A stretch of DNA of 64,000 nt, taken from IMG/VR virus record IMGVR_UViG_3300037502_002993, positions 1 through 64,000 of that record; one strand, written 5' to 3'. Positions 3,986-62,967 of this stretch are shown here, one piece after another; position 1 is the first letter of the stretch; each line of letters starts with the position of its first letter. A model generated the notes under the pieces. The model saw only the letters and a list, made by a program, of their open reading frames with translations, searched no databases and had not been told where the DNA came from. Both the position numbers and the translations under genes were made by a program.

Positions 3986-4615
3986 TTACTCCTCCATTGG
4001 CTGTGAGAGGTGCTCTTCGAGCTCCTCATCTGTTACAGCTTCCAACACCACACGCCACCCATAATTCGCGAGCGTGCCCGAAGAAGCGTCCGTGAGCAGG
4101 CCCTCTGCAGACGAAGACCAACGGTAGACATGACAGTTGGGGTCGTCAGGGTCTGCCCCTTGAACCCAACTTGATCTACCTTCTCCGGAACCCAATCCTA
4201 AGTCATCATCGGTGTAGTTGACGTCCCACTTCCAGTTAAACGGATCGTCCACATGGATCGGATACATAAACCGATCCCATTCATCACTCGTTAGCAGGCG
4301 TATCTTGTAGCGGTGATTGCCAATAAATATAACCCTAGTGCCGTCTACCACACCGCCAGCCACTAGTGCATCATAAGAGACTGAGTGGACTAGAGTACGG
4401 ATAGATACGTATAGCGGCCTGCCATTGTCCTCGAATACTAGCCAACCCTGGTCTTCGTTGTGTGGGACTCCGTCTTCCAATCCAACCAACTCAATCAGCT
4501 CTGGGTAGGGGATCAGATCTTCTCCCGATATCACACCGTAAAAGCCAAGGGTGTTGTAACCATACTCTTTTCCTTCAAAACCTGGAACTGATGGATTAGT
4601 TGCTACCGTCTTCAT
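3986..4615 (-). CDS. Jumbo-phage GFYG..GWRxxL family protein (putative C-type-lectin-like fold; candidate DGR target)
   Basis: GFYG, WLVF, IRLL..EWDR, G.SSWVQG and GWRVVLE motifs; paralog of 4632..5396 and 43265..44089. Confidence 0.75.
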   Translation of the reverse strand: MKTVATNPSVPGFEGKEYGYNTLGFYGVISGEDLIPYPELIELVGLEDGVPHNEDQGWLVFEDNGRPLYVSIRTLVHSVSYDALVAGGVVDGTRVIFIGNHRYKIRLLTSDEWDRFMYPIHVDDPFNWKWDVNYTDDDLGLGSGEGRSSWVQGADPDDPNCHVYRWSSSAEGLLTDASSGTLANYGWRVVLEAVTDEELEEHLSQPMEE

Positions 4616-4631
4616 TTTAAATACCTCACTT

Positions 4632-5396
4632 TTAAGTTTGATTGCTATAGTTTCGAGCTTTCAGTTCTGATTCTACTCGAATCAATGTTTTTCGAAGGGA
4701 TGCAGTGCTGATCTGCGACCAGTTAATGTCATCGACTGCCCTAGAATCCACTGGTGTGTGGTCGAGATCCGCCCCCACGGTAGGCTGTGCTAACCCCACC
4801 GGCTCCAGCACCACACGCCACCCAACATTCGGGTGCGCGTCCGAAGAAAGGATCGCGATCCCGTTCTCTACAGACGAATACCCACGACAGACACGGTAGT
4901 GGGGGTAGTGACAGTTGGGGTAAATGGGGTACACCCCTTGAACCCAACTGGCCTGTCCATCTCCGGAGCCTACTCCTAAGTCATCATCGGTGTAATCACA
5001 CCCCAAATTTTGGCCGGTGGGGTCAGATACATGTAGCGGTGAAATGAGGTGGTCCCACTCCTCATTTTCAGGTATGCGTACCCGATAGTTAACCCCTCCA
5101 ATCTGATGGATGATTCTTGAACCATCCACTAGACCGCGCTCTTCCAACTCCCGAAAACTGACGCCGTAGGCAGTTGTCAACATGGATATGAAAAGTGGCT
5201 TTCCACGCCAGAAGAACTTCAGCCATTCTCCGTTTCTGTTATGTACTTTTTCGGGGTGTATGCCTGCCCATTCAGCGAGGTCTCCGTAACTGATTAGAGT
5301 TTTGGGATCTACCCGACCGAAGAATCCCAAATCACGATCTCCTAACAATAAAAGACGACCACCAGGCACTGTCTTTAGTAATTTGTTCATGTCCAT
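4632..5396 (-). CDS. Paralog of the same family (candidate DGR target)
   Basis: GFFG, WLKF, YRVR..EWD, SWVQG..RG..GWRVVLE motifs. Confidence 0.75.
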   Translation of the reverse strand: MDMNKLLKTVPGGRLLLLGDRDLGFFGRVDPKTLISYGDLAEWAGIHPEKVHNRNGEWLKFFWRGKPLFISMLTTAYGVSFRELEERGLVDGSRIIHQIGGVNYRVRIPENEEWDHLISPLHVSDPTGQNLGCDYTDDDLGVGSGDGQASWVQGVYPIYPNCHYPHYRVCRGYSSVENGIAILSSDAHPNVGWRVVLEPVGLAQPTVGADLDHTPVDSRAVDDINWSQISTASLRKTLIRVESELKARNYSNQT

Positions 5397-7573: not shown

Positions 7574-7966
7574 TCAGAACTCGTCGAGTTCACCCACCCC
7601 TTTGGTCAGGGGGTTGAAGACCATGGCAATTCCGTTACCGTAGCCCACAAAGCCGTCTTTCAGGAGATACTCCAACAGGTGCCCTTTCCCATGGGAGATG
7701 CCAAAGGCGTCGGTAAAGGCCTCAATGAAGTCTTTCGCGCGCGCTTCCCACTCCTCCCCATCATACTGCAGTTGGGGGATTACCTTACACTCAAGGATAC
7801 CGTCTTCCAACCCGAACTGGAGGACACCTTTGGTGACCACGATCCGTTCGAGTTCATCATCCTCTACGATAAAGACCTCAGGGGTGGTCGTAGGGTCTTT
7901 GCTGCAGGCCCGTTGAAAGGCATCCCACACTTTACGCAGGGTCTCATTGGTAACGGGTTTTCCCAT
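7574..7966 (-). CDS. Hypothetical protein (start MGKPVT)
   Basis: AAGGAG RBS before the ATG at about 7966; the longer track ORF overlaps the helicase end. Confidence 0.7.
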   Translation of the reverse strand: MGKPVTNETLRKVWDAFQRACSKDPTTTPEVFIVEDDELERIVVTKGVLQFGLEDGILECKVIPQLQYDGEEWEARAKDFIEAFTDAFGISHGKGHLLEYLLKDGFVGYGNGIAMVFNPLTKGVGELDEF

Positions 7967-13506: not shown

Positions 13507-13916
13507 CGAGATCTTCAAGTGGGGTCGTTACGCCCACCCCGCGGTGTGTCTCCCTCACGGGAGTCATCCGCTGCTCCAGGCTTTCCCTGGATGCCGAGAC
13601 TATCTCTTGATCCTCTCCCAGATGGAGTAGGACCCTCCCCATTTCCCCGACCGATAACTTGCCGGGTACAGGCTGGTAAGACCTTAGTCGTTGAGCACAT
13701 CCCATATCCATCCGCAGGGAATGGACTTAGGGACTTCGCTGCGGATTACCCATTTCACTCCAGGGACTGGAGATCATCCTTACGCTTTTTACCGCACCCA
13801 AGTAGTTAGCTTGGACCCCGTGGGGTGTCTGACGACACCGGTCACTCTTTCGAGCACGAGTTGGTACGTAAGGCTTTAGTGGCTTCCCGCGATTAGAGGA
13901 GGTTCACTCAGGACTC

Positions 13917-14736
13917 TCATCCTGAGCGGGCCGTAGGTACGTAATAATGCAATCGGTATCCTTCCACAACGCGACATCTAGCGATTGCTTTGATGACGTC
14001 GTTTTTACTTCCAAGGGTATTGGAAAAGTGTTCAGCTGCTTTAGTGATATTGGTGAAGAACAACTCACCGCCTTCATTGTCAACAGCAATCACACCACGG
14101 GCACGGTTTTTGGGGTTATCTCTAAAGATGGCCAAATCCCGCTCGTTGAACTCCGGCCAGGGAGTGTCATCGCCCTCTTGACGAAACAGGTAGCCGTAGT
14201 AAGGCCTGTCCCATTTTTTCTTGATCTGATTAAGAAGTCCTCCAGGATACTCTAACCTTAAGTCTTCATTGACACTCCCCTTCTTTTAAGAAGGGGATTC
14301 TTGCTTCATTGAACTGACTTACCTTCGGTAAGGAAGGCAGTGGTCACTTTCTCCACAAGCGTTTAGTGAGTCCGTATGCCCTACGGCCTCTGCTAAAGTC
14401 ACACTCAATGGGCCAGCGATAGCGATACCCAATGTTTGATGGGTGGAGGTTATCCCAATTCCCATCGATGTGAAACGGTTCGACCTTCCACCAATGGTGA
14501 TAGCCTAGCCTTAACTTCCCAAACGCCGCCAGTACCAACAGAGCGACGGGGATTTCACTTATCACCCCTCCAGTGTTAACGCTAACTACCCACCCTAGCA
14601 TCTCATCAAAGCTAGGGGTTATTTCCACCCCGTTATGGAAAACCTGGCCGCTTTCCATAACCCTGACTTCCCCGGTAGTCAATGCCGGATCAATCAGTCC
14701 AAACCCTTGTTCGTTAGAAAGGTACTTTTCAAACAT
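13917..14736 (-). pseudogene. Intron-encoded HNH-type homing endonuclease, disrupted by a TnpB right-end insert
   Basis: N-terminal part 14409..14736 has HIDGNWDNLHPSNI; C-terminal part 13917..14267 is open for 116 codons with GYLF..PWP and a NUMOD1-like FTNITKAAEHF. Confidence 0.75.
14269..14408 (-). mobile_element. Stand-alone IS200/IS605 right end / TnpB omegaRNA, copy 1
   Basis: Near-identical to 50072..50212; ends GGGGAGTGTCAA on the minus strand; no tnpB and no left end. Confidence 0.88.
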
Positions 14737-26992: not shown

Positions 26993-27436
26993 CAAATGTC
27001 TTCAGTGTGGTTCGTTAGGCCACACCCGCCACCTCCCCGCCTCACGGCGGTAAGGCGCTGCTCTGGGCGTTACCCAGACTGTTGAGATCATCTCTTATTC
27101 CACTTCCTGTGGAATCCTCCCGTTTTGACCCCACTTGGGGCCTACGCTACTCATCACTGTGATCCATTCCTTGGCAGTGCTTTCGCTGACCGTTGAGCCC
27201 ACTCCTTATCAATTAAGACTTAGGAGCTTCGCTGCGTGATTGGACAATCTCCACCGTTATTACCGACTGGCGTGTTTGTAACGCCAGGAGCGGCTAGTAG
27301 CCGCCCGTACCCAGTTAATTAGACTGGCCGCTAGTTTGTTTCCAGAACTAGTTTGGTAGATGGAGCTCTAAGCCCGTCCCCGCAATTAGAGAGGTTGTTT
27401 AGCTGTATGTTACCATACAGGGTGACATCACTGTTT
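26993..27436 (-). ncRNA. Group I intron 3 of the beta' gene (444 nt, no ORF)
   Basis: Exon GGUGAU pairs with internal guide GUCACC with a U-G at the splice site; AATTGCGGGGA and AATCACGCAGC core elements; ends GAAGACATTTG. Confidence 0.88.
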
Positions 27437-27448
27437 ATCACCATCAAA
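27437..27448 (-). CDS. 12-nt micro-exon 3 encoding FDGD
   Basis: TTT GAT GGT GAT lies between an intron-terminal G and the next 5' splice site. Confidence 0.88.
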
Positions 27449-27929
27449 CAAATATCTTCGACTGGAGTCGTTAATTCCAGCCCGTCTTCCCTGGGACTAC
27501 TGCACCAGGAGACAGCTTCAGGATTTCCCTGAATGATTGAGACCATATCTTCCACTGTGTCTAAACACAGCAGCCTCCCGTTTCGATTTAAAGGACTTAC
27601 GTCTAGTGCCATTCCACACTAGCGGCCTACCCAAACACTTGGCTCTACTCTACTCACTTTAATCTCCGTAGAGACCAGCGCACTTTACAGCGCTGTCACT
27701 CCGCTTGCTTTGAGCAAGCCGCAGCTTTCGATGGTCGTTGAACACATGCCGTAGTTCCTAGTGTAGAAACCTTAGGCACTTCGTTGCGCTGATTCTGCCT
27801 GTTCAACACGTTTTTACCAAGCCACCCACTTCCATTACTGGGGGTGGTATTGTAGTGGGTTTCCCCCTACAAGTGGTAGTGTTGACATACAGCAAGTTCC
27901 CGCAGTTAGAGAGGTAAGGACCTTGATCG
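27449..27929 (-). ncRNA. Group I intron 2 of the beta' gene (481 nt)
   Basis: Exon GGAU pairs with GUCC; AACTGCGGGAA and AAGATATGGTC core elements; ends GAAGATATTTG. Confidence 0.88.
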
Positions 27930-27935
27930 ATCCGC
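27930..27935 (-). CDS. 6-nt micro-exon 2 encoding AD
   Basis: GCG GAT directly after the intron end GAAGGCACCG. Confidence 0.85.
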
Positions 27936-28402
27936 CGGTGCCTTCAGTAGGGGGCGTTACTCCCTACCCGCTACCCTTCTGTCTCTCGACAGTAAGGCGC
28001 TGCTCCAGGTTTTCCCTGGATGCCGAGACTATATCTTCACCCGCCAGCTTTAGACTGGGTAGGGTGTCTTCCGTTTCCCCGCCCGATCACTTGGCAGGTA
28101 CAGGGGCCCGAATCCCTTAGTCGTTGGGCACATCCCATATCCCTGTAAAAGGAACTTAGGGACTTCGCTGCGTGATTCCCCATTTTGCCTTATCTAGCGC
28201 ATCCTCGTCTCTTTTACTGTACCGCTGTGGTTAGCAGCGCCCCTGTGGGGTGTCTGACGACACCGGTCACTCTTTCGAGCACAGGTTAGTGTACGAGGCT
28301 TTAGTGGGTTCCCGTCAATTAGGAAGAACACCGCCCAGAACTTTCATCCTGGGGGAACATTAGGAAAGTTTCTCCAATCGAGGTATTTTAACTTTCCTGT
28401 CT
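27936..28402 (-). ncRNA. Group I intron 1 of the beta' gene (467 nt)
   Basis: AATTGACGGGAA, AATCACGCAGC, GACTAAG and AAGATATAGTC core elements; starts after CCC AAT; its P1 pairing is not obvious by eye. Confidence 0.85.
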
Positions 28403-53409: not shown

Positions 53410-55083
53410 TTAAACTGCCGCCTGTGGAAATTTAATCGCAGGGAGTGGTTCATAATTGACGAGTTCGAAATCGTCAATTATGAATTCATTGAGTTCTTTA
53501 CGATTTCTATTTATTACTACCTGAGGTTTGTCCTCTCCACACTCCGCGTTTCTCCCAAGTTGTTCAACAATCCCCTCAATTTGGTTTTTATAAATATGTA
53601 CGTCGCCCCCTGTCCAAATAAATTCCCCCACTTCCATATTCACAACTTGAGCAACCATCATTAACAGTAGTGAGTAGGAAGCTATGTTGTAGGGAACACC
53701 CAGACAAAAATCCGCAGACCTCTGAAAAAGCTGACAGGATAGTCTATAACGATCGCCACCGGGGATGGGTTTCGCGTAAAACTGAAACATAACGTGACAC
53801 GGAGGGAGTGCTTGGAGTCCTTGAGCGGGATTTAAGTTAGGTTGAATTGTTTCATTGGACAAAACTTCAGGATTCCAACCACTGACAATGTGTCTTCTTG
53901 AGTTAGGTCTTTCTCTGAGCCCTTTTATGAGGTCTGATATCTGATCTGAGAAGAGTCTCCGCCTGACTAATTTACCCTCAGGAGGGCTGTAGTGTTCAAT
54001 TTTATATCCATCGAACTTCCTACTCTCATAGATACCATTTCTGAAATTACGGTAGGTTTCTACGTTGACACCAAGAAATCGCGTAAAATCAGTTATTGTT
54101 TCAAAGAGATATTTATTACCGGAAGTATCTTCCACTTCAACAGGAACACCATCCCTATTTAGTCCGATGTTGTACGATCTAGGTAGAAATATAGTAGTCG
54201 ATATATCGTAGCAATTACTCCCAAAATAATCTTTGTCAAGGGAGTAAAGATGTGGAGTTTGGCACCACTCTTCGTAAAAGGGAATACAGGAAATGTCTTC
54301 CAGGAAATTTTCGAAACACAACCACCGTGGCGACACATAAGTGCCCTCTAACCCATAATACTTATACGAAGGGTGGGTGGCCTGATGACACCTCACTACC
54401 ATGTTTCTCCAAAGTGAATAAGCCTGCTCGTTAAAAGGGCGCTTGGGATTTCCTATACATGCTACATCTGCGACAGATGGAACATGTGTGTCTTTGACGT
54501 GAATATTGTTTCTTATATTTGGTCTGGTGACTTCAGCGTAATTTCCCGTGTTTACAAATCTTACTAAATAAATAGTATTACGACCCCCAAGAGTCCCTAA
54601 CTCTTTTATAATCTCGTACGGGTCACCGTAATTTTCCTGGAACCTTTCCAGATCACCCGCATATTCGCTATCAATATGCTCGGGACGACTTGCTATAGGT
54701 AGCTCAACTGGTCCCGGTGCAGGGCCGGTTCGTACATCCACTAATTCAGCAAACGGTGATTGTACAGGCCAGCGTCTCCACATGGCCGAATATATCGGGC
54801 CTAAGTTACCTTCATCGTCAGCCCAAGCGTTCCAAATGTTCACTCCTCTACTCTTAAGGTAGAAATTATTAGTATCACCCCTCAGGAACCACAGGAGTTC
54901 GTGTATGATCGAACGCAGGTTGATATTTTTTGTTAGTAGTAAAGGAAAATGTTCGCTTACATTGAAACGCATCTGCTTACCGATCAGTGATAGAGTTCCT
55001 ACCCCAGTCCGGTCATCAGTGTCTATGCCGTCGTTGAGAATATCCCTGGCAATATTTAAATACTGCTTATCTACACTATTCAT
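53410..55083 (-). CDS. thyA: Thymidylate synthase with a ~270-aa in-frame endonuclease-like insertion
   Basis: DRTGVGT, ELLWFLRG, LGPIY, SRRHIV, ALPPCH, QRSAD, PYNIASY, DVHIY. Confidence 0.93.
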   Translation of the reverse strand: MNSVDKQYLNIARDILNDGIDTDDRTGVGTLSLIGKQMRFNVSEHFPLLLTKNINLRSIIHELLWFLRGDTNNFYLKSRGVNIWNAWADDEGNLGPIYSAMWRRWPVQSPFAELVDVRTGPAPGPVELPIASRPEHIDSEYAGDLERFQENYGDPYEIIKELGTLGGRNTIYLVRFVNTGNYAEVTRPNIRNNIHVKDTHVPSVADVACIGNPKRPFNEQAYSLWRNMVVRCHQATHPSYKYYGLEGTYVSPRWLCFENFLEDISCIPFYEEWCQTPHLYSLDKDYFGSNCYDISTTIFLPRSYNIGLNRDGVPVEVEDTSGNKYLFETITDFTRFLGVNVETYRNFRNGIYESRKFDGYKIEHYSPPEGKLVRRRLFSDQISDLIKGLRERPNSRRHIVSGWNPEVLSNETIQPNLNPAQGLQALPPCHVMFQFYAKPIPGGDRYRLSCQLFQRSADFCLGVPYNIASYSLLLMMVAQVVNMEVGEFIWTGGDVHIYKNQIEGIVEQLGRNAECGEDKPQVVINRNRKELNEFIIDDFELVNYEPLPAIKFPQAAV

Positions 55084-57732: not shown

Positions 57733-58350
57733 TTATTCATCGAGTGGTTTGAGGGCATCCATGATGCCAAGAATGCGATCGGTGTAGATAGAAACGTCCG
57801 ATTCGAAGTCATTCGTCTCCAGGTGAAACTTTCTCACCGCCCCGTTGAGTGGATCGCCAGACACTGACGTGTATTGAAGTGAAGCCAGCTGCTGATACAG
57901 GTCAAGAGCAACGCTCGGAACAGCGACAGGCAACTCAGACTCTGCGGACAGAAAGCTATTAAAGAAGTCCAGCAGTGGGGGGAGTTGCTCAGTCGAAAGC
58001 GCCACCACGTTACTTTCGGGTTTTGCCAGTGAGGTGAACTCAAGTATTGTAATGGGGGCGGTGTGATCGTCTTTTGATAGGTTTGTGAAATCCACCCAGA
58101 GCCTGCCGGCCTCCGTATCTTGGTTGATACGAAAGCTCAACACGTAGATAGAGGGGAGTTGTGAGATTGTCGACACCAGGCAGCGCACTACCTGGTCATC
58201 GAACTCAGACATCCCCTTTGGGTTTTGATCATCAATGTACACACCTGCGTCAATATCACGCAGGATGTCTTTGTAGACCTCACGAAAGGCGTCGGCCTTA
58301 TTGTCAATCATTGCTGAAGTAAACCGTGCTTGATGGTTAATGCTCATCAT
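57733..58350 (-). CDS. Hypothetical protein
   Basis: 205-aa coupled ORF. Confidence 0.65.
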   Translation of the reverse strand: MMSINHQARFTSAMIDNKADAFREVYKDILRDIDAGVYIDDQNPKGMSEFDDQVVRCLVSTISQLPSIYVLSFRINQDTEAGRLWVDFTNLSKDDHTAPITILEFTSLAKPESNVVALSTEQLPPLLDFFNSFLSAESELPVAVPSVALDLYQQLASLQYTSVSGDPLNGAVRKFHLETNDFESDVSIYTDRILGIMDALKPLDE

Positions 58351-58662
58351 TCATCCCTTTTTGTTAATGGTGAACACCTGACCGGAAGGGTCGTAAAGGC
58401 GGTAAATGGTAGCTTGCACCAGGGCATCGGGATCGAAATCCATATCAGTTCCTGACTCCGTTGCGCTCTTCACCCCCTCCATCACGGCTTCTCGGATGAG
58501 GGTCTTGAGCATCGGACTCTCCCTCAGGATTAACGGAAGGACTTGGGGGTGTTCGCGAGTCGTGGAGTAAATCCAGTGGCCCTTAGGAAGGGCCATCGAT
58601 ACCACCGCACAACCTGATCCGTCGGGTAACTCAACACCGAAATTCCGTTCGTCCATGGTCAT
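58351..58662 (-). CDS. Small phage protein
   Basis: LPDGSG...SMALPKGHWIY..DMDFDPDALVQ; AAGGAG RBS. Confidence 0.7.
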   Translation of the reverse strand: MTMDERNFGVELPDGSGCAVVSMALPKGHWIYSTTREHPQVLPLILRESPMLKTLIREAVMEGVKSATESGTDMDFDPDALVQATIYRLYDPSGQVFTINKKG

Positions 58663-58722
58663 CTCCTTAGCGTACAAAAGCGTGCAAAAAGCCCTCCCCG
58701 TTTGGGGAGGGCGGTTATGTCG

Positions 58723-59667
58723 TTAGAACACCATCCCGTCATCCATCATCTCGTCGTCTCGATCGACGATAGACTTCCGCTGGCTGTAGCTTGTGTGAAT
58801 GCGAGAGAGCTCTTTCTGTCGCTCTTGAAGGTGTGTGAAGATCCGCTCGACGTCAGCATGGTTGATAACGAAGTGCAACTGATCCCCGGAAGGGATCTGG
58901 TCAGTGAATCCAACAGTGTTGTAGTGGGGATTACCGAAGGCTGCTTCCTTATCCGGATCGTCATACAGGCTCGCCACTGAGATCGGCTCCAGCACAGCCC
59001 CTGCCTCTTTGCGGTTGAGGTGAACGGTCAAGGAGGAGAGTTGATGCCCTACTGAAACTGCTTGGTTGTAGTAGACCCAGTTAGTGACGTCCTGCGCGTC
59101 GAGCTCTGCATTGGTTTGAGAGCCGAGTTGGGCCAGTGCCTCGATGTTAAAGATGACGTTCTCATCCACGTGGGAACGAGACCCTTTGTAGTTCTCATGG
59201 TAGCAGAGCACAGCAGGACGCATGGCTTTAGCGCTCATAGCCTCAAGGGTCTTGAGCGTACCGATGGTGTTATCCGTACGGCGCTCCGTGTCGTCGGCTC
59301 CCACAGCGACGCCCACCACCGGAATGCCCTCCTCCATCAGTGCTGACATGATAGCAGGCGCGGCTACACTACCCGTGCCACCACTGGCGCTGAAGAGCAC
59401 GATGTTGAATTCAGCCGGGGTAAAGTGCTCAAGGAACCGTGGGATCTCTCGTGCAATCACTCGGTAGTTGTGCTGGCGCACACTGCCTGATCCTTTTACT
59501 CCTTCGATATAGACCCGTTTCTCAGGGTCGATGTTATCGGCGATGTTGGCTTTGCTGGAGTCCAGGTATACCACATCCACGTAGGGACTCTGAATCCGCT
59601 GACCCAGGTTGATTCCCAAGCCGCCGCAGCAGTAGATATTTACGCGCTTATTTACCGTACTGTCCAT
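58723..59667 (-). CDS. phuZ: PhuZ tubulin-like spindle protein
   Basis: CGGLGINLG, DSSKAN, GSG, tubulin signature SASGGTGS, ELD.QD, acidic tail DDGMVF. Confidence 0.93.
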   Translation of the reverse strand: MDSTVNKRVNIYCCGGLGINLGQRIQSPYVDVVYLDSSKANIADNIDPEKRVYIEGVKGSGSVRQHNYRVIAREIPRFLEHFTPAEFNIVLFSASGGTGSVAAPAIMSALMEEGIPVVGVAVGADDTERRTDNTIGTLKTLEAMSAKAMRPAVLCYHENYKGSRSHVDENVIFNIEALAQLGSQTNAELDAQDVTNWVYYNQAVSVGHQLSSLTVHLNRKEAGAVLEPISVASLYDDPDKEAAFGNPHYNTVGFTDQIPSGDQLHFVINHADVERIFTHLQERQKELSRIHTSYSQRKSIVDRDDEMMDDGMVF

Positions 59668-60418
59668 ATTTCACATACCTCTCTAATCGGTTAAATTTAA
59701 TCAGTCGGTCTATAGTGCTAATGTGAACATTTAAGCCTTCCGCAGCTTCTAACCTTGACTCGTAAGTAACGCCATTTATCGTTACGGGCCTTTTTGGTCT
59801 CCCCATACGAGACGCGACAGAAGGGTCTTTCCATAACCGTCTAGAATTGAGACGATGTTTTTCTATTGTCTCTGTCGAACACTTACGGCCAAGTTGCTTA
59901 CGTCTGTACTCAGGATCCTGCCATTTTTTAATTACTGCCTGACGATGTATTTCCTTCTTCTTTGGGTCGGAAAACTGTTCCGCATGCTGCTGACGTATGA
60001 GTGTCTTGGTCTCTTCTTTATGCTTGCGCCCGTTGAATGCAGCATAAACATCAACTGCAATATTAATCAACCCAGGGTTATTTTTACACTCCTCGATTAA
60101 CAGTTGTTCTAATCGTAGGGCATCTTCTGTAGTCTCCATCACCGTATAGGTGACCAGAAAATCGTTCGCATTACTAAAGAGTACTTGAAATCTAGGATTT
60201 TTATGCTCTTTTAATCTCAATGCTCTTAAATGTTGGCGAACTCTTACATAAATGTCCTGGCTACTGCCTATATAAAAACCACCAGTGGGAGTGTGTTCTA
60301 TGACATATGTACCAGTAACCGAATCTAATCTGCGGCTGGTGGAGAATGTTGTTCTATGGTACAGCCTGGGTGGGTCACACCCACCACAAGCGTATACGCG
60401 AACAGTTACTTCAGACAT
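59648..60418 (-). CDS. GIY-YIG homing endonuclease fused to the original PhuZ N-terminal peptide
   Basis: GTY..FYIGSS..R, LEQ..IN, NUMOD3-like GRKHKEETK, NUMOD1-like VTINGVTYESRLEAA; begins MSEVTVRVYACGG. Confidence 0.88.
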   Translation of the reverse strand: MSEVTVRVYACGGCDPPRLYHRTTFSTSRRLDSVTGTYVIEHTPTGGFYIGSSQDIYVRVRQHLRALRLKEHKNPRFQVLFSNANDFLVTYTVMETTEDALRLEQLLIEECKNNPGLINIAVDVYAAFNGRKHKEETKTLIRQQHAEQFSDPKKKEIHRQAVIKKWQDPEYRRKQLGRKCSTETIEKHRLNSRRLWKDPSVASRMGRPKRPVTINGVTYESRLEAAEGLNVHISTIDRLIKFNRLERYVKYGQYGK

Positions 60419-61163
60419 GCTCATTTCCTTCTCGTTTTTGGTAAGGGTAATGGGAGGCAATCAGAAAGAGTGCTTCCCCGTCGATGAACACTTCAAAGAA
60501 CCGGTAGTCACCGGGTAGTTGGATGATCATATCCCACAGACCCGTTTCTCTTAATTCGTACTGCAGTCCACCATGCTCATCGAACGCTTCTTGGAAATGC
60601 TCCAAGATGATGCTGTCCAGATGAGCGGCTACAGCATTGTAGGCATGAGGGTGGATCATATCGATCCACCACCGCCACCAGAACTCCTCAAGTTCCTTAC
60701 GGGCAAGGAATTCATAGCGCGTAGAGACGGCCTTAGCGTTATCCCGGTACAACTCTCGATACAGCGGGTCAATAAGCTCATCCACCACATCACGATAGGG
60801 CCTGAGATCGTACACCCACACAGACGTACGGTCTTTGCGTACCCCTTTGTGATTTTCATTGAGTGAAAAGAGTAGGAGGTGGGGCTTGCCCTCCACCCAA
60901 CGCATCTCCACCCAAGAGAGCCCGTCCTCATCAACGGCACCAAAGATGGTGATCAAGTGTCTAGCTAACTCAACAGCTTCAAACAGGGCGTCAAGTTGAT
61001 CCTCCCACTTAGAGTCCCACTCCACGGTGTCGTTAACTAGGATGATGCCCGCATCGGCACAGGCAGCACTGACATACCGCTCGATACCGCATTTCAGGTC
61101 GTGGTGCTCTTCTTCCGGTGTGGAACGGAACAACTCATCGAACCTTAACGTGGTTTCCAACAT
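60411..61163 (-). CDS. Hypothetical protein
   Basis: GAGG RBS, 250 aa. Confidence 0.7.
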   Translation of the reverse strand: MLETTLRFDELFRSTPEEEHHDLKCGIERYVSAACADAGIILVNDTVEWDSKWEDQLDALFEAVELARHLITIFGAVDEDGLSWVEMRWVEGKPHLLLFSLNENHKGVRKDRTSVWVYDLRPYRDVVDELIDPLYRELYRDNAKAVSTRYEFLARKELEEFWWRWWIDMIHPHAYNAVAAHLDSIILEHFQEAFDEHGGLQYELRETGLWDMIIQLPGDYRFFEVFIDGEALFLIASHYPYQKREGNEHV

Positions 61164-61173
61164 AGCGGTGTCC

Positions 61174-61581
61174 TCAGAAGGGGGTCAGTTCTTCTATCAC
61201 CAGATAGTGAGCGGTAGTGATGTACAGCCTGCTCTGCCCCTCTACCACAATCAACGGAAACTCTTCATGGGCAAGAGCCATCTCAATCTTCAACCACTCT
61301 GGCAGCGGAGTGAGTTCCGACAACACCCGCATCACCGGGGGGTATTCAGCTAATGCATAGTGGTTAATATTTCCCTCCCGGACCAAATCCCCTTGACTGC
61401 AGTCCATCTGCACTAACGTCCGCAGGGTGATTAGGTGCTGAAGGGTCGCTTTGATCTTGCCAGGAAGTAGTTCCTGACTCGGCTTATTGTGTTCCATGGG
61501 CTTGGGAAGTGACCGGTGGCCAGTGCGGAGAGAGGGAAGGGTGAACTCACTGGTAGTAGGCTCAAGTATGGTGGTGGTCAT
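61174..61581 (-). CDS. Hypothetical protein (start MTTTIL)
   Basis: AAGGA RBS. Confidence 0.6.
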   Translation of the reverse strand: MTTTILEPTTSEFTLPSLRTGHRSLPKPMEHNKPSQELLPGKIKATLQHLITLRTLVQMDCSQGDLVREGNINHYALAEYPPVMRVLSELTPLPEWLKIEMALAHEEFPLIVVEGQSRLYITTAHYLVIEELTPF

Positions 61582-61743
61582 TTGTTGGTTCCTTCGGACG
61601 GTTTCATGATGGGGTGGTGCATTGATATATTGAAGGTGTGAAACTTTCTCTATTCGTCCCATGCGGCAAAAAGGGGTCCCCCGGAGGAGACCCCCATTAT
61701 GCGGCAATCCCTGTCTGTTTAATGGCTGTGTGGCGTGTTTCTC

Positions 61744-62967
61744 TTAGCCGTAGTGATTTTTGGTGAGTGACCTTAGGATCAGGTAGAGTAGAGCTGCGGT
61801 TCTCACTGACGCCACCACCGCGTTATTACGGGTTTTGACACTATCGCGCACCAACATCTCCATCTGCTTTCTCAACTTTAGCACCGTGGGATCAACACTC
61901 CTTGAGGCCGTCAGTAGGTTCTTCAGACTGGCCAGGATTCCTGCAATGTCATTGGTGTCATCAAGGAGACGTCGGTTTCTCACCAGGTAGTCAAAGCAGT
62001 AGAGTTGGGTCTCCTTCACCATCTCTTCCAGGTAACGATACTTCCCACCCCTACCGTAGTTGGCTGAGAGGACCGTAAGGGTCTCTTTTAGCAACTGCGG
62101 CGGCATGGTGTGCATGGCACTGGCAATCACATCCACTAGCTCCTGCCGGATTAAGCTGCGTTCATTGCGACACACCTGATCCATGTAGCGGATATAGGAA
62201 CTAAAACCCCCACGCCGATCGCGCAGGACGGTATCCCCATCCATGTTGATGGTGGTGGCACTCACGCTCTTGTGACGTGTTCCGGCTTCCTTCAGTTTGA
62301 TGTACTCATCGTAAAGGGTCTTCACCAACTCACGAATACGCCCCTGGGTGTCAGTGACCGTACGAATGATCATCGGCTCGTCTTCAAATTCCTGTAAAAC
62401 CCCCTGATAGATCCGGTTGACTAACAGGTCCTCGCTGCGGGCTTCTAACAGCGCCTTCCAGCTGCCGTAACGTTTCAGGTCAAAGCGTCGGTTCAGACTG
62501 GCATAGAGCGCCTGGGCAATCTCTGGGTCTGCCAGATAGCGAAACCGTGGCACCAAAAGACTGGTCAGGAAACGGTAATGTAGTACCATGAAGCAGTGCT
62601 TCTGTGCCTCTTTCCTCAGCTGACTGGACAGCCCCTTCTCTTGATTCAATCGATAGACCACATAGACGGGGGTATAATTGAACACATCCCCGCTGACTTT
62701 AAAGTCGTGGTTGATGGCACTGGCGTTCTCAAAGTCCTTCTCAAGCAATGTCTCGTCGACATCAAGTACCATGTCGTACCAATAGTCACGATCACTGTCC
62801 AGAAAACGTACTGGATGGACACCTAATAATGCCCCACCAAAGAAGGCCGCGTGGTCATCATTGCGGGTCATGAAACGATTGGAGTATTGGATGATGCGCT
62901 GACACATCATTCGATCAAACTTGACTTCAGAAAACTGCCGGTCAAAGATCTCTTTTAACGTAGCCAT
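61744..62967 (-). CDS. Conserved jumbo-phage core protein
   Basis: FFGG.LLGVHPVRF, FDLKRYGSW, DTQGRIR, SVRTA.LLYL motifs. Confidence 0.8.
   Translation of the reverse strand: MATLKEIFDRQFSEVKFDRMMCQRIIQYSNRFMTRNDDHAAFFGGALLGVHPVRFLDSDRDYWYDMVLDVDETLLEKDFENASAINHDFKVSGDVFNYTPVYVVYRLNQEKGLSSQLRKEAQKHCFMVLHYRFLTSLLVPRFRYLADPEIAQALYASLNRRFDLKRYGSWKALLEARSEDLLVNRIYQGVLQEFEDEPMIIRTVTDTQGRIRELVKTLYDEYIKLKEAGTRHKSVSATTINMDGDTVLRDRRGGFSSYIRYMDQVCRNERSLIRQELVDVIASAMHTMPPQLLKETLTVLSANYGRGGKYRYLEEMVKETQLYCFDYLVRNRRLLDDTNDIAGILASLKNLLTASRSVDPTVLKLRKQMEMLVRDSVKTRNNAVVASVRTAALLYLILRSLTKNHYG

Follow-up and report, generated by a model that had tools for sequence, protein, structure and literature searches.

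A GIY-YIG endonuclease gene that begins with the start of a phage tubulin gene and is followed by a complete phuZ

Homing endonucleases are, to our knowledge, thought to enter conserved coding sequence only by means of a self-splicing intron or intein and to be intergenic otherwise. I-TevI, for example, is encoded within the self-splicing group I intron of td. The Seg and Mob genes of T4 are, as far as we know, located between genes and carry starts of their own, and we know of no description of a duplicated host gene end or of the use of host initiation signals for them. Here we describe a locus at which a GIY-YIG endonuclease gene occupies the start of phuZ, the gene of the phage tubulin PhuZ. 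It is found in a stretch of 64,000 nucleotides (nt), called the window in the following (positions 1 to 64,000 of the IMG/VR virus record IMGVR_UViG_3300037502_002993), which is part of a 220,598-bp record with terminal repeats. An earlier note, made from the letters alone, had pointed to this arrangement; its observation is confirmed by our analysis and its interpretation largely supported.

Several described systems share aspects of this arrangement. In fungal mitochondria, the so-called mORFs of Allomyces macrogynus (atp6) and Glomus (atp6, atp9, cox2, nad3) comprise an endonuclease of the GIY-YIG or LAGLIDADG type together with a foreign C-terminus, and the native end is left as a remnant (PMC3630166). 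Among T4-like phages, intronless homing is described for SegF (Belle et al., 2002, PMC155333, as cited in PMC12908238), SegB is a further free-standing endonuclease (PMC2330249), and the Seg and the HNH-type Mob enzymes have been reviewed (PMC2988022). In Aeromonas phage Aeh1, mobE splits nrdA without a splicing element; nrdA stays split and its products reassemble (PMC3045599). Among tubulin-encoding jumbo phages, PhiPA3 uses an intron-encoded HNH endonuclease against PhiKZ (Birkholz et al., 2024, as cited in PMC12908238). A full-text literature search returned no report of an endonuclease or intron in phuZ.

All genes of the locus, namely the upstream gene, the endonuclease gene and phuZ, are located on the minus strand. 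The features that carry the argument are as follows (ORF, open reading frame; aa, amino acids).

60411..61163, minus strand: upstream gene, an ORF of 250 aa with no known family match; its TGA overlaps the region of the captured phuZ start codon (ATGTCTGA)
60426..60431, minus strand: Shine-Dalgarno sequence GAAGGA, 7 nt 5' of the captured ATG; apparently the translation signal of the resident phuZ, now serving the endonuclease
60380..60418, minus strand: captured 5' fragment of the apparently resident phuZ, 13 codons, MSEVTVRVYACGG, fused in frame to the endonuclease and matching the PhuZ profile
59648..60418, minus strand: endonuclease ORF, 256 aa, from ATG 60418-60416 to TAA 59648-59650, starting MSEVTVRVYACGG and continuing CDPPRLYH
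59678..59683, minus strand: new Shine-Dalgarno sequence GAGAGG for phuZ, within the endonuclease 3' end and 10 nt 5' of the phuZ ATG
59620..59667, minus strand: replacement 5' end of phuZ, 16 codons, MDSTVNKRVNIYCCGG, overlapping the endonuclease stop by 20 nt
58723..59667, minus strand: intact phuZ, encoding a phage tubulin of 314 aa (Pfam TubZ_C_2, E 2e-28, plus Tubulin)

The GIY-YIG ORF was said to begin with a tubulin-like strand and a Gly-Gly loop, and this is what we find at these coordinates: the captured fragment corresponds to tubulin strand S1 and the beginning of the T1 GTP loop. From 20 other PhuZ proteins, only the N-terminal 11-19 residues, ending at Gly-Gly, were used to build a profile, and this was compared with the six-frame translation of the complete genome (364,265 residues). 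The endonuclease N-terminus was the top match (15.7 bits, E 0.0023), while the real phuZ start came second genome-wide (10.7 bits). One might argue that a likeness of only 13 residues is a chance match of a short peptide. However, this peptide ranks first among all six-frame residues, it is located at the syntenic phuZ start, and the feature is repeated in seven other loci, so that chance is effectively refuted. The good ribosome-binding site (RBS) that the earlier note saw before the endonuclease start is GAAGGA, at a spacing of 7 nt. Downstream of the captured ATG, the GIY and YIG motifs are passed before another in-frame ATG, GTG or TTG occurs, at codon 67. Consequently, a functional enzyme can only be made from the captured ATG. 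As read from the sequence, translation of the endonuclease now starts on the 13 resident phuZ codons, which have kept their RBS and still overlap the stop of the upstream gene. Both junctions are spanned by contigs from other samples (X2 records 3 and 4; X4 record 10; X5 record 19; X7 records 27 and 28).

At the opposite end, the 3' end of the element brings a new RBS and a second, diverged phuZ 5' end, so that a complete phuZ follows. The predicted overlap of the endonuclease 3' end with both signals was confirmed: GAGAGG and the ATG at 59667 are present, the endonuclease TAA lies 20 nt inside phuZ in a differing frame, and the full 314-aa PhuZ follows. This protein starts with MDSTVNKRVNIYCCGG and continues with LGINLGQRI. 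It is alignable over its full length to 20 homologues, matches 203 phage records at a coverage of at least 80%, and retains G15, G16 and N20 of the T1 loop (GGxGxN) as well as G96, G97, G99 and S100 of the T4 loop (GGTGS), while its acidic C-terminal tail ends in DDGMVF. The captured fragment and the replacement copy are 56-57% identical to each other, and the proposed repair of phuZ by a diverged N-terminal duplicate is supported. The replacement start (..RVNIYCCGG) also resembles the native start MKAVNIYSCGG of the endonuclease-free L008 (P0005; 47% overall identity), which may hint at the type of donor, the match being too short for a firmer assignment.

As the earlier note had stated, neither an intron nor an intein is recognizable at the locus. 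In 58151-61924, Rfam delivered no match at E<=1; elsewhere in the genome, its group I model (RF00028) detects seven introns, and it also detects the phuZ intron of the relative L002. By Pfam at E<=1, no Hint or intein domain was detected. Furthermore, the endonuclease frame closes in a stop that is out of frame with phuZ, and thus no intein-like continuous frame exists. The genome is rich in group I introns, and the phuZ of relatives is interrupted by one at a different position. It might thus still be supposed that the interval is removed, by a cryptic intron, by an intein or by bypassing during translation, so that MSEVTVRVYACGG is joined to the rest of PhuZ. Besides the negative searches and the TAA, two further observations speak against this: splicing is not needed, since phuZ has a second, complete start equipped with an RBS, and in five of the eight loci described below the fragment hits a stop codon soon after the junction. 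Splicing is thus excluded as far as sequence allows, and we consider a removal of the interval extremely improbable.

The endonuclease is the sole GIY-YIG gene of the 220-kb genome and comprises the following parts (AF2, AlphaFold2).

59648..60379, minus strand: endonuclease proper, aa 14-256 with the stop codon; PHROG 314 'homing endonuclease' (E 6e-18)
60080..60313, minus strand: GIY-YIG catalytic domain, aa 36-113; Pfam PF01541 (E 1.6e-9, above its cut-off)
59672..59791, minus strand: putative C-terminal DNA-binding module, aa ~210-249; small beta hairpin and helix-turn-helix in the AF2 model

A profile of the endonuclease family matches the I-TevI catalytic domain (1mk0, 1ln0), with 1mk0 at E 6e-8, and comparison of the AF2 model with 1ln0 by Foldseek gave a template modelling (TM) score of 0.74. 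Y38, Y49, R59, H63, H72 and N74 are invariant in the family alignment, E104 and N119 are near-invariant, and all catalytic positions (Tyr, Tyr, Arg, His, His, Glu, Asn) are kept in the window endonuclease. In the model, a helical linker is located between the catalytic part and the C-terminal beta hairpin and helix-turn-helix. The family PF20987 (I-TevI_DNA-bd) is weakly matched by the related endonuclease P0031 (E 0.011) and is listed for P0033; the window protein stays below significance. The GC content is 42% in the endonuclease compared to 51-55% in the flanks. Captured residues 1-14 show a predicted local distance difference test (pLDDT) value <50 in the AF2 model and are predicted to be disordered. 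Five loci moreover carry the peptide unfused, and the peptide itself probably plays no role in the enzyme. Within the family, two relatives differ along their length: between L028 (2589-3252) and L029, identity reaches 90-97% in the catalytic domain and linker and only 39-63% in the C-terminal DNA-binding part, which suggests modular exchange within the endonuclease gene.

The same arrangement was found at other phuZ loci. An exhaustive profile search with the endonuclease led to P0031, which is 42% identical to the window endonuclease and starts MTIRTRLYCCGG, and to P0062, which is 63% identical over 78 residues and starts MKKVKVYACGG. Three IMG/VR loci were added through the endonuclease alignment. 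Across the resulting eight loci, the related endonucleases are 33-63% identical. For each locus, the captured fragment, its connection to the endonuclease and the state of phuZ are given.

Window: fragment MSEVTVRVYACGG; in-frame fusion; complete phuZ starting MDSTVNKRVNIYCCGG
L022 (Tara): fragment MTIRTRLYCCGG; in-frame fusion; complete phuZ starting MSVITRLYACGG, with a TAATG overlap with the endonuclease stop
L023 (Tara): fragment MKKVKVYACGG; in-frame fusion; contig stops short of phuZ
L024: fragment ending GRISVYACG; separate short ORF overlapping the endonuclease ATG; phuZ present
L025: fragment MNKTLNTVRLYAAGGG; separate short ORF overlapping the endonuclease ATG; phuZ present
L028: fragment ending TIRIFACG; stop codon, with ATG 3 nt on; phuZ present
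L029: fragment ending VRIYSCG; stop codon, with ATG 3 nt on; phuZ present
L030: fragment MEVGKVRLYGCGG; out-of-frame overlap; phuZ present

In all eight loci the break falls no more than 2 nt from the Cys-Gly-Gly codons, and a complete phuZ directly follows the endonuclease in every locus that is complete (7/7). Insertion at the conserved GTP-binding loop, as claimed for the window, is thereby seen with a break at the same Cys-Gly-Gly codons in seven further loci. In-frame fusion occurs in three of the eight loci, while the other five possess a short leader ORF. Thus, what is conserved is the use of the phuZ initiation region and not the fusion protein. The earlier claim that the endonuclease uses the phuZ translation signals stands accordingly for the initiation region, which is used in all loci, whereas the fusion protein is one variant only. 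In the endonuclease tree, from which L023 was left out as too short, the seven scorable phuZ-linked members form one supported clade (95/95). Distant endonucleases with at most 31% identity (the cultured phages RP12 and FLC4-11C, and 30 IMG/VR loci) were not found beside phuZ in any of the contexts checked, the closest endonucleases of cultured phages are at most 33% identical, and ~15 distinct phuZ loci are unoccupied. We conclude that the element is very probably a free-standing, I-TevI-like GIY-YIG homing endonuclease without intron or intein, belonging to a clade that occupies one codon-precise site in phuZ after the Cys-Gly-Gly of the T1 loop. In L023 (1444-1716), the fused endonuclease ORF ends early, with a TGA at 1714 after 90 codons and 17 nt before the contig end, which might reflect either a decaying copy or an assembly error.

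These loci also bear on another scenario, in which the phuZ 5' end was duplicated in tandem, an unrelated endonuclease landed between the two copies, and these diverged in place. Two copies of the same 13-16 codons indeed flank the endonuclease. However, they are just 57% identical, while the endonuclease between them is near-identical across samples (see below) and has thus moved recently. Furthermore, the same break in eight loci, with endonucleases down to 33% identity, points to one site-specific family and not to repeated accidents, and none of the ~15 empty phuZ loci shows a 5' duplication without an endonuclease or a remnant of it. We therefore regard a local tandem duplication as very unlikely.

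Relatives without the endonuclease allow us to judge which of the two copies is resident. The nearest ones, the Logan contigs L002 and L010, share the gene order of the window and encode a PhuZ with 71% identity to the window's; the homologue of the upstream gene in L002 shows 34% aa identity (E 4e-27). In both, phuZ starts with MSASVRLYAMGG followed by AALNLGQRV, and the upstream stop and the phuZ ATG overlap as ATGA. The phuZ ATG of the endonuclease-free L006 overlaps the upstream stop too, matching the position at which the endonuclease ORF starts in the window. On the DNA level, identity to the L010 phuZ start is 65% for the captured fragment, about the level of the phuZ body (68%), and 54% for the downstream copy. 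The earlier note had also considered that endonuclease-free relatives might already start phuZ in the form KRVNIYCCGG; this was not borne out, because the start of L010 and L002 resembles the captured fragment more. Closer pairs were found at two other loci. Over the upstream genes and as far as phuZ codon 13, the occupied L023 and the endonuclease-free L006 are 96-99.9% identical; from there on L023 reads into the endonuclease, and the L023 leader equals the L006 phuZ start base for base. The phuZ start of the endonuclease-free L062 (MEVGKV...) is as long as the L030 fragment and shows 83% identity to it, while the L030 downstream copy is longer and shows 52% identity to the L062 start. Presence and absence of the endonuclease at one site are thus seen for L023 and L006, for L030 and L062, and for the window compared to L010 and L002. 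Together with the comparison between samples (see below), four lines of evidence agree in identifying the fragment as the likely resident copy.

It could be objected that the phuZ-like leader is part of the mobile cassette, which would have been inserted upstream of an untouched native phuZ, with nothing repaired. The DNA layout is formally the same under both descriptions, and in L028 the protein sequences of leader and downstream copy hardly differ, so that a leader could be copied from the local gene or travel beside it. However, the leaders of the window and L030 are closer than the downstream copies to endonuclease-free relatives, and the leader of L023 is indistinguishable from the L006 phuZ start. 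The comparison between samples provides two further arguments against such a cassette.

For this comparison, Logan contigs of four other samples were aligned to the window. While the flanks diverge by 5-11% between samples, the endonuclease is near-identical. In X5 (freshwater), 454 nt of the endonuclease contain 0 differences, compared to 24 in 210 nt of phuZ (59404-59613). In X2, a single difference was found in 59470-59900 (431 nt, comprising the endonuclease 3' part, the replacement start and ~65 phuZ codons), followed by 8 differences in the next 444 nt and then 54 in 1015 nt. Upstream, the differences listed (best 40 of 280) begin at 60383, within the junction Gly codon, and continue at a density of 5-7%. 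The fragment variants of X2 and X5, located at 60383 and 60389, show a flank-like density, while at least 685 nt of the endonuclease gene hold 0-1 differences. In agreement, the endonuclease core of L028 and L029 is 90-97% identical and their flanks 68-84%. Such edges, sharp at the junction and graded within phuZ, are predicted by double-strand-break repair, if the break lies at or near Cys-Gly-Gly and the recipient keeps its left end. The endonuclease has evidently moved laterally, and recently so. With respect to the cassette, the leader thus varies like the flank beside an identical or nearly identical endonuclease, and the near-identical tract of X2 runs downstream through the second phuZ copy. 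We consider insertion above an untouched phuZ to be unlikely for these reasons. In X7 (sludge), contigs match both ends of the endonuclease gene and diverge inside 59766-60247, where ~480 nt are absent or replaced; one loose end holds a terminator-like palindrome, and the contigs reach 25-49 nt into the divergent part before they stop. This form may be a decaying or remodelled endonuclease copy.

Several points weigh against a resident fragment and an imported replacement start at a clade-specific site. A contiguous MSEVTVRVYACGGxGINLG, which the earlier note expected in endonuclease-free relatives, was not seen directly. Locus searches by PhuZ in IMG/VR and the Joint Genome Institute (JGI) metagenomes found no genome of this species that lacks the endonuclease, a megablast search of 50,697 phage records delivered neither a same-species empty allele nor a further occupied relative, and exact 26-35-mers of the endonuclease found nothing in IMG/VR or the JGI metagenomes. 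The degenerate pattern YACGGxGINLGQRIQ likewise retrieved no contiguous allele, and word-indexed protein searches with the endonuclease and the upstream protein returned the window's own proteins alone. The collections searched may lack near relatives of the window's genome. With 71% PhuZ identity, L010 and L002 offer the nearest empty site. Each duplicated piece spans only 36-54 nt, and the assignment of the native copy thus rests on few positions. In L028, the two copies are almost identical beside the junction, which fits neither an old foreign replacement nor immunity through divergence, as the earlier note had suggested; divergence is accordingly not required at this locus. A further member of the clade, L031, is found at another locus: its endonuclease (2273-2908) is flanked by genes of 323 aa and 487 aa, the latter ATPase-like, and phuZ is not nearby, which likely represents a change of target site. 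The table of differences holds the best 40 of 280, and the edge in X2 is best supported by the X5 records, not base by base. Finally, the evidence stems from uncultured metagenomic assemblies.

How such an element could spread can be envisioned as follows. In a co-infection, the enzyme would cut an endonuclease-free phuZ at or near the Cys-Gly-Gly codons. Repair from the occupied genome would copy the endonuclease along with the replacement start and a stretch of downstream phuZ that varies in length, while the recipient's own first codons would stay as the leader. The open, RBS-equipped phuZ start would then feed ribosomes into the endonuclease gene. One might speculate further, with considerable reservation, that this represents a long-lived 'start-capture' strategy, in which a GIY-YIG clade without initiation signals of its own lives on a tubulin start and pays for it with a spare 5' end. 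If so, PhuZ N-termini would be shuffled between jumbo-phage lineages, and the enzyme may act as a weapon between co-infecting phages; a deletion found in the phuZ of L064 (see below) would be a scar of or an escape from attack, and the stem-loop at the junction a throttle on endonuclease synthesis. Since empty as well as occupied alleles are available from nature, it can be tested directly which sequence is targeted, where it is cleaved and what the leader does. If active, the enzyme would be a candidate for influencing how tubulin-encoding jumbo phages compete and exchange genes.

The fungal mORFs are the closest precedent, yet the resemblance is one of mechanism and the phage element stands outside that group. 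As in mORFs, an intronless endonuclease ORF is inserted in phase into a coding gene together with a diverged duplicate of the displaced end, and the native end persists alongside and matches an endonuclease-free relative (PMC3630166); in-phase joining applies to the window, L022 and L023. In contrast to the mitochondrial arrangement at the 3' end (foreign C-terminus, ORF, native remnant), the phage element is its 5' mirror image. It captures the translation start, either by fusion or through a leader ORF, which has no counterpart in mORFs. With T4 Seg enzymes it shares the modular, I-TevI-like GIY-YIG type, the intronless state, the presence/absence polymorphism, the co-conversion of flanking markers and the low GC content, but differs by restoring its host gene with an imported end. 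Similar to mobE in Aeh1, it is a homing endonuclease gene within a conserved phage coding sequence without splicing (PMC3045599); there, however, the gene remains split, while phuZ is made whole by the imported 5' end. Catalytic sequence, fold and conserved residues agree with I-TevI (1mk0, 1ln0), though the window endonuclease is not intron-encoded. The window endonuclease and that of PhiPA3 (as cited in PMC12908238) are both homing endonucleases of tubulin-encoding jumbo phages with a possible role in co-infection competition, whereas the PhiPA3 enzyme belongs to a different family, targets the gene of a virion RNA polymerase subunit and uses an intron. The element at phuZ would thus represent a third route into phage coding sequence, namely to insert, to take the start of the host gene and to bring a replacement gene end. 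As a 5' counterpart of the gene-end replacement in fungi, it suggests independent evolution in very different genomes.

The junction between fragment and endonuclease carries an additional feature.

60359..60397, minus strand: 17-bp imperfect RNA/DNA stem-loop across the fragment/endonuclease junction; RNA folding free energy (dG) -23.5 kcal/mol, z -4.1

The earlier note had described a hairpin GGTGGG-TGTGA-CCCACC as marking the junction. This hairpin (plus-strand coordinates 60369-60385) is real and turned out to be the tip of the larger stem-loop; none of 200 shuffled sequences folded as well. Two stem positions are altered in natural variants, and dG still amounts to -19.5 to -22.2 kcal/mol. 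Its left arm is the captured fragment, and its right arm encodes the endonuclease-family motif PPRLY. As this motif is conserved in the family and shared with L023, the stem-loop is not simply an insertion scar. In five of seven other-locus junctions a comparable stem-loop is absent, and L024 holds only an 8-bp inverted repeat (z -1.85). Thus, the part of the claim that made the hairpin a general mark of the junction did not stand. A general junction mark or a foldback scar was consequently rejected, and the stem-loop is regarded as lineage-specific and no signature of the element. It may, speculatively, damp translation of the endonuclease.

Within phuZ, a second homing site was detected, which is unoccupied in the window.

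59376..59377, minus strand: unoccupied second homing site, between the GGC and ACG codons of SGG/TGS; an intron is located here in relatives

In L002 (2859-4489; also in L003), a ~1.63-kb group I intron with a 430-aa HNH/NUMOD4 ORF splits the tubulin signature GGG/TGS; the exon junction of the L002 phuZ was checked against the intron-less L010. In other samples, contigs of the window's species have an insertion at the corresponding site: an X7 contig carries 1642 extra letters at 59376..59377 and X5 has a loose end there. Mobile elements of this phage group thus hit both PhuZ loops that contact GTP: the endonuclease occupies the T1 loop, and a group I intron carrying an HNH gene interrupts the T4 signature.

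An altered phuZ was also found in L064, a 231-kb IMG/VR phage. At L064:2475-2520, the gene reads MTVKTRLYA and then runs out of frame to ...VDTSQSN; ~21 codons including the Cys-Gly-Gly T1 loop, which equals the homing site, are deleted, and a new ATG is present at the joint. One gene downstream of phuZ, a 335-aa protein with two GIY-YIG-like regions is encoded (4058-5065). The deletion could be the scar of an imprecise endonuclease loss or of an attack.

Other mobile elements are present in the same genome. Rfam group I matches were found at window positions 13574-13948 (minus strand) and 27063-28379 (minus strand) and at genome positions 165870-168108 and 212895-213348; four of the seven group I introns of the 220-kb genome lie above the gathering score, and three are adjacent, within 1.3 kb of the window. 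The thymidylate synthase gene (window 53410-55083, minus strand) encodes 557 aa and contains an in-frame insert of ~280 aa (about 53929-54768), while the genes of the relatives L002 and L010 encode 258 and 405 aa. This insert matches PHROG 2081 'HNH endonuclease' (E 3e-31), is free of stops and lacks a group I intron match; it may be a second splicing-free endonuclease insertion in the same phage. In L002, a group I intron match (7829-7944) directly follows the 258-aa thymidylate synthase ORF at the contig end and is reminiscent of the T4 td intron.

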